Shown piece by piece: positions 10,501 to 19,500 of a stretch of DNA of 64,000 bases. A program made the translations under genes and the position numbers. The stretch is from Octopus sinensis. Its lineage: Eukaryota. Position 1 is the stretch's first letter. Each line of letters begins with the position of its first letter. Location of the stretch: contig NC_043008.1 in the NCBI RefSeq assembly GCF_006345805.1, forward strand, positions 22,506,001 to 22,570,000, in the 5' to 3' direction. Under the pieces are notes generated by a model. The model ran no database searches and was not told where the DNA came from. It worked only from the letters and a program-made list of their open reading frames with translations.

Positions 10501-13500
10501 TTAAAGCAATATAATCAAAAGAGCAAACAGAAGAAAGGGTGATGGCAAAAGAAGAAAAAGGATAAGTGAGTTATTCTTTGTAAGTCTAGAACTTATTTTA
10601 TCAGTCTCTTATGCCGAACTGCTAAGTTATGGAGACATAAACACAACAACATCGGTTGTTGAGCGATGGTGGGGTGGGGTCAAACACAGATACCCAAATG
10701 CATACATATATATATATATATATATATATATATGTATATTATATATATATATATATATATATATATATATGTTATAATATAATATGTATATTAATATATG
10801 TATATATATATATGTATATTATTATATATATATATGTATATATGTATATATATTATAATATATATATATATATGTTATATGTATATATATATATATTATA
10901 TATATATATGTATTATATAATATATGTATATATATATATATGTATATATATAATATGTATATATATATATGTATATATATATATGTATATATATATGTAT
11001 ATATATATATGTATATATGTATATATATATATATATGTATATATGTATATATGTATATATGTATATATATATATATATATGTATATATGTATATATGTAT
11101 ATATGTATATATATATATATGTATATATGTATATATGTATATATATATATATGTATATATATATATGTAATATATATATATATATTATATAATATATATG
11201 TATATATTATAGTTATATTATATATTATATATATATAATATATATAATATATGTATGTATATGTATATATATATATTATATATATATAATATATATTATA
11301 TATATATATATATATATAATATATATATATGTATTATATATATATATTATATATAAAAAATTTTGCAATTAAGGACAACTACTTAATAAGGAAAACTTAA
11401 CAAGAAATTGTCAGGTAGATAGCGTAAAAACCTCATAAGAGAAAAAATTTCGAAAATAATTATTTCTTATTGAACATATTAATTTATATATAGAGGGCAT
11501 AATTATACATACATGCCAGGAGGCATTATATATACTGCCAAACGCTAAGAGGGACAATCAGTCATTTCTACCAAAAAATTACTAATCCCACCGAATGCAA
11601 TTTTTCAAAGTAAGACATTAAAAATATTAGGCCTGTATCACAGTGATTTCATACTTACGTAATCATCAGCAGGCCTGAATGTATTATAAATAAACAACGA
11701 CCCTGCCTCGCTTAAGCCGAACAGCTAACTGATCAACATCAACGAAGCACATGGGTGAGTTTATATATATTACATCCGGGTGAATGGCAAACTTTTACAA
11801 AATTGCATTTCGGGAGAGGAAAAGTTTTTTCGGAATAAAAATTTTGCAATTAAGGACAACTACTTAATAAGGAAAACTTAACAAGAAATTGTCAGGTAGA
11901 TAGCGTAAAAACCTCATAAGAGAAAAAATTTCGAAAAAATTATTTCTATTGAACATATTAATTTATATATAGAGGGCATAATTATACATACATGCCAGGA
12001 GGCATTATTGTTATATACCTGCCAACGCTAAGAGGGACAATCAGTCATTTCTACCAAAAATATTACTAATCCCACCAAATGCAATTTTTCAAAGTAAGAC
12101 ATTTAAAATATATAGGCCTGTATCACAGTGATTCATACTTACGTAATCATCAGCAGGCCTGAATGTATTATAAATAAACAACGACCCTGCCTCGCTTAAG
12201 CCGAACAGCTAACTGATCAACATCAACGAAGCACATGGGTGAGTTTATATATATTACATCCGGGTGAATGGCAAACTTTTACAAAATTGCATTTCGGAGA
12301 GGAAAAGTTTTTGTCCTAATTGCAAAATTTTTATCGAAAAAAAAACTTTTCCTCTCCCGAAATGCAATTTTGTAAAATTGCCATTCACCCGGATTTATAA
12401 TATATTAAACTCACCCATGTGCTTCGTTGATGTTGATCAGTTAGCTGTTCGCTTAAGCGAGGCAGGGTCGTTGTTTTTGTTTATTTTCATTACATTCGCC
12501 TGCTGATGATTACGTAAGTATGAAATCACTGTGATACAGCCTATATATTTTTAAATGTCTTACTTTGAAAAATTGCATTCGGTGGGATTAGTAATATTTT
12601 GGTAGAAATGACTGATTGTCCCTCTTAGCGTTTGGCAGGTATATATAATGCCTCCTGGCATGTATGTATAATTATGCCTCTATATATAAATAATATGTTC
12701 AATAAGAAATAATTATTTTCGAAATTTTTTCTCTTATGAGGTTTTTACGCTATCTACCTGACAATTTCTTGTTAAGTTTTCCTTATTAAGTAGGTCCTTA
12801 ATTGCACAAATTTTATTCCGAAAAAACTTTCCTCTCCCGAAATGCAATTTTGTAAAAGTTTGCCATTCACCCGGATGTAATATATATAAACTCACCCATG
12901 TGCTTCGTTGATGTTGATCAGTTAGCTGTTCGGCTTAAGCGAGGCAGGGGTTGTTTATTTATAATACATTCAGGCCTGCTGATGATTAATTACGTAAGTA
13001 TGAAATCACTGTGATACAGGCCTATATTTTTAAATGTCTTACTTTGAAAAATTGCATTCGGTGGGATTAGTAATATTTTTGGTAGAAATGACTGATTGCC
13101 TCTTAGCGTTTGGCAGGTAATATAATGCCTCCTGCATGTATGTATAATTATGCCCTCTATATATAAATTAATATGTTCAATAAGAAATAATTATTTTCGA
13201 AATTTTTTCTCTTATGAGGTTTTTACGCTATCTACCTGACAATTTCTTGTTAAGTTTTCCTTATTAAGTAGTTGTCCTTAATTGCAAAATTTTTATTCCG
13301 AAAAAACTTTTCCTCTCCCGAAATGCAATTTTGTAAAAGTTTGCCATTCACCGGATGTAATATATATAAACTCACCCATGTGCTTCGTTGATGTTGATCA
13401 GTTAGCTGTTCGGCTTAAGCGAGCGGGGCAGGGTCGTTGTTTATTTATAATACATTCAGGCCTGCTGATGATTACGTAAGTATGAAATCACTGTGATACA

Positions 13501-16500: not shown

Positions 16501-19500
16501 ATGTATATATAATGCCTCCTGGCATGTATGTATAATTATGCCCTCTATATATAAATTAATATGTTCATAAGAAATAATTATTTTCGAAATTTTTTCTCTT
16601 ATGAGGTTTTTACGCTATCTACCTGACAATTTCTTGTTAAGTTTTCCTTATTAAGTAGTTGTCCTTAATTGCAAAATTTTATTCCGAAAAAACTTTTCCT
16701 CTCCCGAAATGCAATTTTGTAAAAGTTTGCCATTCCCCGGATGTAATATATATAAACTCACCCATGTGCTTCGTTGATGTTGATCAGTTAGCTGTTCGGC
16801 TTAAGCGAGGCAGGGTCGTTGTTTATTTATAATACATTCAGGCCTGCTGATGATTACGTAAGTATGAAATCACTGTGATACAGGCCTATATATTTTAAAT
16901 GTCTTACTTTGAAAAATTGCATTCGGTGGGATTAGTAATATTTTTGTAGAAATGACTGATTGTCCCTCTTAGCGTTTGGCATGTATATATAATGCCTCCT
17001 GGCATGTATGTATATTATGCCCTCTATATATAAATTAATATGTTCAATAAGAAATAATTATTTTCGAAATTTTTTCTCTTATGAGGTTTTTACGCTATCT
17101 ACCTGACAATTTCTTGTTAAGTTTTCCTTATTAAGTAGTTGTCCTTAATTGCAAAATTTTTATTCCGAAAAAACTTTTCCTCTCCCGAAATGCAATTTTG
17201 TAAAAGTTTGCCATTCACCCGGATGTAATATATATAAACTCACCCATGTGCTTCGTTGATGTTGATCAGTTAGCTGTTCGGCTTAAGCGAGGCAGGGTCG
17301 TTGTTTATTTATAATACATTCAGGCCTGCTGATGATTACGTAAGTATGAAATCACTGTGATACAGGCCTATATTTTTAAATGTCTTACTTTGAAAAATTG
17401 CATTCGGTGGGATTAGTAATATTTTTGGTAGAAATGACTGATTGTCCCTCTTAGCGTTTGGCATGTATATATAATGCCTCCTGGCATGTATGTATAATTA
17501 TGCCCTCTATATATAAATTAATATGTTCAATAAGAAATAATTATTTTCGAAATTTTTTCTCTTATGAGGTTTTTACGCTATCTACCTGACAATTTCTTGT
17601 TAAGTTTTCCTTATTAAGTAGTTGTCCTTAATTGCAAAATTTTTATTCCGAAAAAACTTTTCCTCTCCCGAAATGCAATTTTGTAAAATTGCCATTCACC
17701 CCGGTGTAATATATATAAACTCACCCATGTGCTTCGTTGATGTTGATCAGTTAGCTGTTCGGCTTAAGCGAGGCAGGGTCGTTGTTTATTTATAATACAT
17801 TCAGGCCTGCTGATGATTACGTAAGTATGAAATCACTGTGATACAGGCCTATATATTTTTAAATGTCTTACTTTGAAAAATTGCATTCGGTGGGATTAGT
17901 AATATTTTTGGTAGAAATGACTGATTGTCCCTCTTAGCGTTTGGCAGGATATATAATGCCTCCTGGCATGTATGTATAATTATGCCCTCTATATATAAAT
18001 TAATATGTTCAATAAGAAATAATTATTTTCGAAATTTTTTCTCTTATGAGGTTTTTACGCTATCTACCTGACAATTTCTTGTTAAGTTTTCCTTATTAAG
18101 TAGTTGTCCTTAATTGCAAAATTTTTATTCCGAAAAAACTTTTCCTCTCCCGAAATGCAATTTTGTAAAAGTTTGCCATTCACCCGGATGTAATATATAA
18201 ACTCACCCATGTGCTTCGTTGATGTTGATCAGTTAGCTGTTCGGCTTAAGCGAGGCAGGGTCGTTGTTTATTTATAATACATTCAGGCCTGCTGATGATT
18301 ACGTAAGTATGAAATCACTGTGATACAGGCCTATATATTTTAAATGTCTTACTTGAAAAATTGCATTCGGTGTTGGATTAGTAATATTTTTGGTAGAAAT
18401 GACTGATTGTCCCTCTTAGCTTTGGCAGGTATAATAATGCCTCCTGGCATGTATGTATAATTATGCCCCCTTATATATAATATATTATATATATATTATT
18501 ATATAAATATATATATATATGTATATATATATTATGACGCTTGCGATGGTATGGTCATGTGCTGCGGATGGATGAAGAGAGATGTGTGAAGAAGTGCCAC
18601 TCCCAAACAGTTGAAGGTATCGGGGGAGAGGTAGACCCAGGAAGACATGGATGAGGTGGTCAAGCATGACCTCAGAGCATTGGGCCTCACTGAGGCAATG
18701 GCGAAGGACCGAGATCTCTGGAGATATGCTGTGACTACAAAGACCCGGGCTGCTTTCTCAGCAATTCCACATACCCCCTACCCATTCTAAGTACCCCCCT
18801 ACCCATTCTAAGTACCCCCCTACCCATTCTAAGTACCCCGGATCCCCAAAGTACCCCGGATCCCCAAAGTACCCTGGATCCCCAAAACCCCAATCCCCAG
18901 TACCCCGGACCTCGTTGCCCCCGTGCCGCTGACACGGTAAAAATGCTCGAATCCGATCGTGACGATGCCGGACCCTCCGGCCCCTGTGCAGGTGGCACGT
19001 AAAAAGCACCCAATCCACTCACGGAGTGGTTGGCGTTAGGAAGGGCATCCAGCCGTAGAAAACTCTGCCAGATTCAGACTGGAGCCTGGAGCGGCCCCTG
19101 GCTTCCCAGACCCGGTCCAAAACCGTCCAACCGTCTGCTAGCGCGGAAAGCGGACGTTAAACGATGATGATGATGATGATGATGATGATGATGATGATGA
19201 TGATATATATATATATATATACAATAGGCTTCTTGCAGCTTCCATCTACTAAATCCACTCACAAGGTTTTGGTTAGCCTGAAGCTATAATAGAAGACACT
19301 TGCCTAAGGTGTCACACAGTGGGACAGAACCCAGAACCATGTGGCTCGGATGCAAGCTTCTTATCACACAGCCACTCCTGCACCCATATAAGAATGTTTT
19401 ATATACTTTATAGTATACTAGCAGTATCGCCTGGCGTTGCTCGGGTTTGTAAGGGAAATAACTATATAAGCATTTTTAGAGAGTTATAGCCAAAAAATAG

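Follow-up and report, generated by a model that had tools for sequence, protein, structure and literature searches.

The window analyzed here is a 64,000-nucleotide (nt) stretch of the Octopus sinensis genome (assembly GCF_006345805.1, contig NC_043008.1, positions 22,506,001 to 22,570,000 of the forward strand); all coordinates below are counted from its first base. Its minus strand carries exons of a PI3K gene, in which Pfam recognized the PI3K_C2, PI3Ka, and PI3_PI4_kinase domains. The closest protein is the Octopus vulgaris class I PI3K CAI9730974.1 (GCA_951406725.2), which the exons match at up to 100%. One intron of this gene holds a tandem array of 483-bp units, each bearing a hammerhead ribozyme motif. 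We describe this array together with a diverged family of the same repeat and a Penelope-like element (PLE) found in the same window.

A tandem array of 483-bp units lies in a PI3K intron

The array sits between the PI3K exons at 19937-20050 and 9311-9391, which bears out the intronic location proposed in an earlier note made from the letters of the window alone. The features of the locus are as follows.

19937-20050, minus strand: PI3K exon upstream of the host intron, amino acids 561-598 of CAI9730974.1 (protein match, 100%)
18489-18532, unstranded: (TA)n, right flank of the array (Tandem Repeats Finder [TRF] and reading)
12307-18488, plus strand: main arm, antisense to PI3K; 12.8 units, from unit position ~262 to ~155, the latter within a TA-rich stretch of the unit itself
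17363-17843, plus strand: single unit bounded by successive cut sites, 481 nt (consensus, 483 nt) (blastn and unit alignment)
12267-12385, unstranded: head-to-head junction palindrome, centered at ~12306/12307 (boundary reading and Rfam)
11356-12306, minus strand: inverted arm, 2.0 units (unit positions ~290 to 483, 1 to 483, and 1 to ~283); sense relative to the PI3K gene
10702-11355, unstranded: impure (AT)n microsatellite, left flank and target sequence (TRF and boundary reading)
9311-9391, minus strand: PI3K exon downstream of the host intron, amino acids 599-625 of CAI9730974.1 (protein match, 100%)

A blastn search of the window with one unit as the query, combined with inspection of the sequence at the edges, placed the array at 11356-18488 and counted 14.8 copies of a 483-bp consensus unit with a GC content of 32.7%. 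TRF reported two abutting arrays, one at 11356-12312 (period 484, 2.0 copies, 97% matches) and the other at 12311-18480 (period 482, 12.8 copies, 96% matches), whose consensus units are reverse complements of each other. The earlier note had described a single array of about 15 near-identical, noncoding units of ~481 bp at 11355-18470. The array and the number of units agree with this description; the right end lies at 18488 and the consensus unit is 483 bp long. The inversion of the first 2.0 units (11356-12306) and the embedding of the array in (AT)n had been overlooked. The length of the minus arm is almost exactly 2.0 units (unit positions 290 to 283). Together with the two main-arm units that adjoin it, this arm makes up a near-perfect inverted repeat of ~950 bp without a spacer (11356-13270). 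Sub-threshold Rfam matches to microRNA precursors at 12267-12385 were rejected as an artifact of the palindromic junction.

The unit is noncoding. Its longest open reading frame (ORF) encodes 53 amino acids (aa) in the consensus and 57 to 67 aa in individual units, and the unit ORFs, joined, had no relatives among 5.8 billion protein sequences. ORF and protein searches found no reverse transcriptase (RT) or endonuclease coding sequence in or beside the 7.1-kb array (11356-18488). No terminal repeats besides the unit itself were found in the array by blastn; a primer-binding site and a polypurine tract were not specifically searched for.

Each unit carries a minimal type I hammerhead motif

The motif at 17322-17369 reads AGGCCTG-CTGATGA-TTACGTAAGTAT-GAAA-TCACTGTGA-TA-CAGGCCT. 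It had been quoted at exactly this place, with a 7-bp stem I, a GNRA cap, and a cut 3' of A17362, and it is read there in full. Helix I (AGGCCUG/CAGGCCU, 17322-17328 and 17363-17369) is an uninterrupted helix of 7 bp with no defined loop 1. The core segment C3-A9 is CUGAUGA (17329-17335), and helix II (17336-17347) consists of a U.U apposition followed by U-A, A-U, and C-G under a GUAA cap. The GAAA at 17348-17351 supplies G12-A14 plus A15.1. Helix III (UCA-CUG-UGA, 17352-17360), closed by A15.1-U16.1, has 4 bp; U16.1 and A17 lie at 17361-17362, with the predicted cut between 17362 and 17363. The order of the parts (helix I, core, helix II, core, helix III, cut site, helix I) is that of a type I hammerhead. 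The full core (C3-A9, G12-A14, A15.1-U16.1, and A17) and the three helices are present in the consensus of all 15 copies, which lie one at each unit junction. Nine copies are intact and six are damaged. Damage had been noted before, for example near 14441; in that unit, which ends at 14473, the core reads CTGCTGAGA.

17322-17369, plus strand: representative intact hammerhead (direct reading, descriptor scan, Rfam HH9 alignment, and folding)
13458-13505, 14913-14960, 15396-15443, 16362-16409, 16840-16887, 17322-17369, 17803-17850, and 18285-18332, plus strand: intact hammerheads (motif listing)
11629-11676, minus strand: intact hammerhead of the inverted arm (motif listing and descriptor scan)
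12114-12161, minus strand: damaged hammerhead of the inverted arm, GAAA reduced to GAA by a one-base deletion that is possibly an assembly error (motif listing)

A strict descriptor scan returned 11 matches in the window, compared with 0.04 expected from shuffled sequence, and the bare core pattern gave 14 matches, compared with 1.6 expected. With a relaxed descriptor, 3 further loci were found outside the array (0.41 expected). C/D-box-like matches to CUGAUGA are the hammerhead core, and a snoRNA was rejected as an identity.

The motif departs from the canonical form at the base of helix II, where the G10.1-C11.1 closing pair is replaced by U.U in both octopus repeat families. This caveat had been raised earlier and is confirmed here. 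The same U.U apposition is found in the axolotl motif HHR_Amex2, which self-cleaves, with dimeric constructs performing much better (PMC7229834). A GUAA tetraloop forms loop 2, and no contact between loop 1 and loop 2 could be assigned from the sequence.

Predicted folding of the monomer and the dimer

The circular plus-strand (hammerhead-strand) monomer was predicted to fold with a minimum free energy (MFE) of -128.1 kcal/mol, compared with -88.7 +/- 5.1 kcal/mol for 100 dinucleotide shuffles (z = -7.7). In this structure 64% of the bases are paired and helix I is present. The circle of the complementary strand reached only -102.2 kcal/mol, with fewer G-U pairs. This difference suggests that the ribozyme strand is structured as RNA.

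Helix III of the array motif is an 11-nt near-palindrome that forms 4 bp and a 3-nt loop. Its predicted energy is -0.2 kcal/mol as a hairpin, compared with -12.1 kcal/mol as a self-duplex, and the MFE structure of two cofolded hammerhead domains is the classical double hammerhead. The folding models thus agree with the earlier proposal of dimer action through a tiny palindromic stem III, and they support the view that the weak, near-palindromic helix III favors a double hammerhead. Related motifs of newt, axolotl, and PLEs are active in multimers and silent in monomeric circles (PMC4209133 and PMC7229834).

A diverged second family retains the hammerhead core

Two copies of a second family, ~72% identical to the array unit, lie elsewhere in the window; both had gone unnoticed in the earlier note.

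46230-46656, minus strand: solo copy B, unit positions ~307 to 483 and on to ~262 (72% ungapped identity to the unit)
46458-46516, minus strand: hammerhead of copy B (descriptor scan)
45239-45346, plus strand: copy A, 108 nt, 5'-truncated and ending in (ATA)n (descriptor scan and alignment)
45273-45329, plus strand: hammerhead of copy A (descriptor scan)

Copy B ends in (TA)n (46137-46228). The motif of both copies is GCUUGCA (GCAUGCA in copy A)-CUGAAGA-UUAAAAAGUGCAUUU(A/G)UGCACUAAU(C/U)AU-GAAA-UCAUAUGA-UA-UGCAGC. All 12 of the 12 fixed core bases are kept, and the sole change in the core falls at the free position N7; at 72% identity, the chance of keeping 12 bases is 0.72^12, or about 0.02. 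Between copies A and B the hammerhead segment is identical at 51 of 54 positions, and the upstream flank is much more diverged. Helix I of this family (GCUUGCA/UGCAGC) is unrelated in sequence to that of the array (AGGCCUG/CAGGCCU) and still forms 4 to 5 bp. Helix III (UCAUAUGA) is still palindromic, and helix II is longer. The helices would therefore appear to be supported by covariation, for which the evidence is thin because only two families are at hand.

A Hydra-clade Penelope-like element shares the window

The window also contains a PLE that the earlier note had passed over, with a hammerhead of the same architecture as that of the array.

55667-58517, plus strand: 5'-truncated, frameshifted Hydra-clade PLE in (TA)n (family consensus motifs; GIY...YIG...R...H pattern read directly)
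55749-56909, plus strand: PLE RT ORF (motif reading)
56882-57460, plus strand: PLE GIY-YIG endonuclease ORF (motif reading)
58442-58479, plus strand: minimal hammerhead at the PLE 3' end (descriptor and reading)

The element starts directly after a (TA)n tract and ends in TATATA. Its RT-like ORF includes an FLDV motif and is followed, after a frameshift, by a GIY-YIG ORF with the pattern GVVY...YTGASE...R...H. Searches of the PLE ORFs against Pfam and against PDB sequences and profiles found nothing, so the identity rests on the family consensus and on direct reading of the pattern. More than 1,300 relatives of ~700 aa were found for the ORF, and their consensus has an RWK motif, a DKT that replaces DKG, a CxCX5C linker, and no cysteines between GIY and YIG. 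These are the features that diagnose the Hydra clade, whose members are shorter than 3 kb, lie nearly always in (TA)n, bear hammerheads, and occur in Cnidaria, Mollusca, and other aquatic phyla (PMC8557442). We also noted that a 28-nt piece of the PLE 3' end is repeated, inverted, at its 5' edge (55733-55760 and 58490-58517).

The PLE hammerhead reads CUGU-CUGAUGA-ACGGCAACGA-GAAA-CUCAGAG-UA-ACAG, with A.A at the base of helix II. A full-length Hydra-clade relative (ENA ERZ25513664, NODE_19, 1-3282), which lies on a terminally redundant contig and has a 713-aa ORF, encodes a protein 58% identical to the window PLE and has a hammerhead ~170 nt upstream of the ORF. That motif reads UUUGU-CUGAUGA-UCGAUGACGU-GAAA-CUCAGAG-UU-ACGAA, with U17 and with U.U at the base of helix II. 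The PLE hammerhead is thus conserved in the relative; helix I differs and still pairs. MAFFT misaligned the PLE motifs, and the pairings of the five hammerhead variants were listed by hand. The PLE and satellite motifs share a 1x1 mismatch at the base of a 2- to 3-bp helix II under a tetraloop cap (GNRA in both window motifs and AUGA in the relative), an odd-length, near-palindromic helix III, and a short helix I.

Insertion footprints and a proposed route of amplification

(TA)n or (ATA)n flanks all five inserts in the window, namely, both array arms, copies A and B, and the PLE. The 3' end of the minus arm falls at unit position ~283, that of the plus arm at ~155, that of copy B at ~262-283, and that of copy A at ~20. 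All four positions are AT rich, all differ, and none lies at the ribozyme cut site (unit position 483). Because the ends differ and none is at the cut site, we infer that the RT template had no fixed 3' end and was a circle or an uncut multimer. Insertions of PLEs into (TA)n, with the copies in tandem or inverted, have been described (PMC8557442).

On this basis, the array is probably the genomic copy of a nonautonomous, non-long terminal repeat (non-LTR) retrozyme of the octopus, whose circular or multimeric RNA was reverse transcribed in the manner of a PLE. The proposed route is as follows. In a transcript spanning at least two units, neighboring hammerheads would pair via helix III into a double hammerhead, and self-cleavage would release unit-length monomers. 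A host RtcB-type ligase would circularize these, and in the resulting highly paired circles the ribozyme would stay off because helix III is weak in the monomer. The PLE GIY-YIG endonuclease would nick a (TA)n microsatellite, and its RT would start synthesis where an AT-rich patch of the circle or uncut multimer offers TA microhomology for priming. Repeated passage of the RT around the circle would write a head-to-tail array, and priming from the second DNA end would give the short inverted arm. The intronic copies are probably passive products of one recent insertion.

The route fits two published proposals, namely, that PLEs mobilize animal retrozymes (PMC7229834 and PMC7761336) and that retrozymes, with consensus lengths of 51 to 972 bp, derive from PLE terminal repeats (preprint 10.64898/2026.07.22.740005). 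A 2020 review held that the repeats gave no means of telling which element is the autonomous partner (PMC7761336). With four independent insert arms of two families and a PLE all in (TA)n or (ATA)n, the window may perhaps preserve a readable footprint of animal retrozyme movement, a suggestion that we make tentatively. If the pattern holds genome-wide, it would identify a (TA)n-targeting Hydra-clade PLE as the autonomous partner and would show the template to be a circle or uncut multimer primed by microhomology.

The retrozyme reading and its alternatives

The array has computable features by which retrozymes are recognized: a type I hammerhead in each tandem unit, low GC content (32.7%, compared with a limit of <45 to 50%), a noncoding sequence, a stable predicted circle, and co-occurrence with a PLE (55667-58517). 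The retrozyme-like element written by rolling circle that the earlier note had inferred is in keeping with these features and with the insertion footprints, and the second family adds support.

Several results weigh against it. The Rfam check suggested earlier was run, and none of the hammerhead models (Hammerhead_1, Hammerhead_3, HH9, HH10, and II) reached its gathering score for the array motif. The best model, HH9, gave 17.4 bits against a threshold of 52 (E = 0.036) in a 111-nt search, and a 7.8-kb search gave no hammerhead match even at E <= 10. Helix II is weak (3 bp plus U.U), loop-loop tertiary contacts are not evident, and in vitro cleavage by published minimal hammerheads of PLEs is poor (PMC4209133). 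The unit shows no sequence homology to the PLE 3' region, the scores being no better than those of shuffles, so the PLE is inferred as partner only from architecture and target preference. Arm ends (12262-12307, 46230-46260, and 46640-46656) cluster at unit positions ~262-307 (the AAAATTTTTATTCCGAAAAAAC region), a cluster that could mark a preferred RT start or stop or a transcription start site. Exact-pattern scans for the hammerhead and the unit found no match in JGI metagenome contigs (two patterns) or IMG/VR viral contigs, as expected for animal DNA. Within the array, conservation of the hammerhead does not exceed that of the remaining unit sequence, with ~10 events in 720 nt compared with ~1.3 to 1.4% elsewhere. 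Finally, a T/G variant at unit position 102 is common to four or five nonadjacent units, a pattern that would not be expected from one clean rolling-circle event.

Two of these points can be examined further. The HH9 alignment from the 111-nt search places every core base of the array motif correctly, and the Rfam hammerhead models also miss the PLE hammerhead and the diverged-family motif. Since the same models fail on these, they appear to be blind to minimal hammerheads of this build rather than to reject the array motif specifically. As to conservation, the earlier note had held that a core no more conserved than the rest of the monomer would count against the element. Taken literally, this is what the array presents, but the test is a weak one because the units are near-identical recent copies, which say little about the source element. 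Pairwise alignments of the units gave 65 indel events and 14 substitutions (in 6,279 nt), and 9 of the 10 hammerhead lesions are indels. Changes in the hammerhead were counted by direct motif reading and pairwise alignment, MAFFT having misaligned the TA-length variation after helix I. The excess of indels probably reflects long-read consensus error in a repeat rather than real mutations; as this ratio is typical of consensus error, the number of units, the lesions of the damaged hammerheads, and perhaps the head-to-head junction should be taken with caution. The low substitution divergence is as expected for one rolling-circle event.

The array might instead be an ordinary satellite, amplified at the DNA level by unequal crossing-over, slippage, or gene conversion in an AT-rich region, with the hammerhead an inert relic (e.g., of an ancient PLE terminal repeat) and neither an RNA circle nor reverse transcription playing any part. 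AT microsatellites are prone to recombination and slippage, and such a satellite would sit comfortably with the even conservation inside the array, the position 102 variant in nonadjacent units, and the unsatisfied Rfam models. We nevertheless consider it unlikely. In a family diverged by ~28%, the core is kept and a different helix I still pairs; RNA folding is very strong and strand asymmetric; solo and 5'-truncated copies end at AT-rich microsatellites, like products of target-primed reverse transcription; and the head-to-head arm matches PLE-type insertions (PMC8557442). Some of the same evidence could be claimed for a tandem pseudo-LTR (pLTR) remnant of an autonomous PLE, as opposed to a separate nonautonomous element. 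PLE terminal repeats carry minimal hammerheads and are seen as partial tandems and inverted copies at (TA)n targets (PMC4209133 and PMC8557442), and a 2026 preprint relates retrozymes to PLE pLTRs. Fifteen units, however, far exceed a pLTR pair, no RT or endonuclease coding sequence lies in or next to the 7.1 kb of the array, and the units have no homology to the sole PLE in the window, all of which makes such a remnant decidedly improbable.

It is more improbable still that the motif is a chance match or that the structure of the array (its copy number, junction, and damaged units) is an artifact of long-read assembly. The 65 indels against 14 substitutions and the 9 of 10 hammerhead lesions that are indels do look like consensus errors, and palindromic junctions are prone to misassembly. 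Assembly error could alter copy number or introduce lesions but could not create a repeat family or a motif, and independent related copies lie elsewhere in the window. Moreover, 0.04 to 0.4 chance descriptor matches are expected per window, compared with the 11 strict matches and 3 further loci observed.

Two other identities for the array were rejected. A plant-type LTR retrozyme would have a type III hammerhead and LTRs, and a hepatitis delta virus-like or viroid-like agent does not fit an array that is chromosomal and intronic. Nor does the array qualify as a PLE itself, since no ORF for RT plus GIY-YIG lies within or adjoining 11356-18488 and the units are not homologous to the window PLE.

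Comparison with known hammerhead-bearing repeats

Dispersed or tandem noncoding repeats with type I hammerheads occur in other invertebrates, among them Schistosoma Sm-alpha and pDo500 of cave crickets. The hammerheads of Sm-alpha and pDo500 are canonical and are recognized by Rfam Hammerhead_1, whereas the octopus motif is not recognized.

[quoted passage not shown] It shares with them a predicted, highly self-paired circular RNA and co-occurrence with PLEs and, with Mytilus, a mollusc host. At 483 bp, the octopus unit is longer than the 170 to 400 nt given in PMC7229834 and falls inside the 51 to 972 bp of the 2026 preprint. Its motif differs from those of metazoan retrozymes in being stripped down, with no recognizable contacts between loops 1 and 2 and with U.U at 10.1/11.1.

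Axolotl Rtz_353 with HHR_Amex2 and newt satellite 2 offer a second comparison, sharing a tandem arrangement (of 330- to 350-bp units in the amphibians), the U.U apposition (in Amex2), and a weak, palindromic helix III, owing to which dimeric constructs of the amphibian motifs cleave much better. In the amphibian motifs, tertiary contacts between the loops are retained and helix III consists of 1 to 2 bp plus a tetraloop; in the octopus motif, a 3-nt loop closes a helix III of 4 bp, and helix II has 3 bp under a GUAA cap. The minimal hammerheads of PLEs (PMC4209133) are alike in their short helix I, the extra or unpaired nucleotide beside A9, palindromic 15.2-16.2 and loop 3, and presumed dimer action, as well as in (TA)n insertion with tandem or inverted copies. 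Published PLE motifs usually have G10.1-C11.1 and a long helix II (6 to 8 bp) and lie in the terminal repeats of an RT-encoding element, whereas the octopus motif lies in an ORF-less 483-bp unit present in 15 copies. Judged by sequence, the octopus ribozyme is intermediate in build, with the minimal motifs of PLEs on one side and the canonical type I motifs that invertebrate retrozymes carry on the other.

In the literature searched, no paper linked retrozymes or hammerhead ribozymes to Octopus, and no cephalopod example of a retrozyme was found. The giant-squid genome lists 235 Rfam Hammerhead_1 matches (PMC6962438), so hammerheads in cephalopods are not new as such. Elements of this kind have already been described in many animals, including a mollusc. 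Nothing here is categorically new, and the interest, which we rate as moderate, comes mainly from the insertion footprints that connect the array with a PLE targeting (TA)n. Through retrozymes, a genome can encode small circular RNAs in abundance, and these elements form a link between retrotransposons and viroid-like agents. The octopus family would extend them to cephalopods, and the window offers a compact test case for the mobilization of retrozymes by PLEs through rolling-circle reverse transcription at (TA)n.

Implications for the host gene and other repeats in the window

The two inverted units are sense to PI3K and the long arm is antisense. Because the inverted units are in the sense orientation, the PI3K pre-mRNA carries two hammerheads in the active orientation, one intact and the other short of one A of GAAA. 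Transcription of PI3K pre-mRNA may itself feed the retrozyme cycle through these sense units. The pre-mRNA would also contain a ~950-bp foldback from the inverted repeat, which is a possible substrate for ADAR or for small-RNA production. A near-perfect inverted repeat of this size, together with sense ribozymes, thus lies in an intron of an essential signaling gene, in an animal known for heavy RNA editing. In Xenopus, retrozymes are depleted from introns, with ~43% of copies being intronic (preprint 10.64898/2026.07.22.740005); the genic location of the octopus array is a little unusual but not exceptional.

Three further repeats were seen in the window. A dispersed element of ~181 to 184 bp (GGTATTTCATCTGC...GTTCAAATTCCGCC...) is present at 3390-3861, 22447-22814, 23594-23965, 39073-39529, and 46670-46840, on either strand and often as about two copies in tandem. 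It resembles a short interspersed nuclear element-type repeat; ARAGORN called no tRNA gene in the window. A GC-rich minisatellite of 61 to 63 bp (GGTGCTTTTTACGTGCCACCGG...GCTGGCAACGG...) recurs at many sites in both orientations (5753-5952, 8187-8363, 20212-20560, 28859-29079, 59302-59405, and 60823-60965) and is probably an internal repeat of another dispersed element. Lastly, a 53-bp tandem repeat (7.5 copies, 92% identity) occupies 38355-38752 in another PI3K intron.

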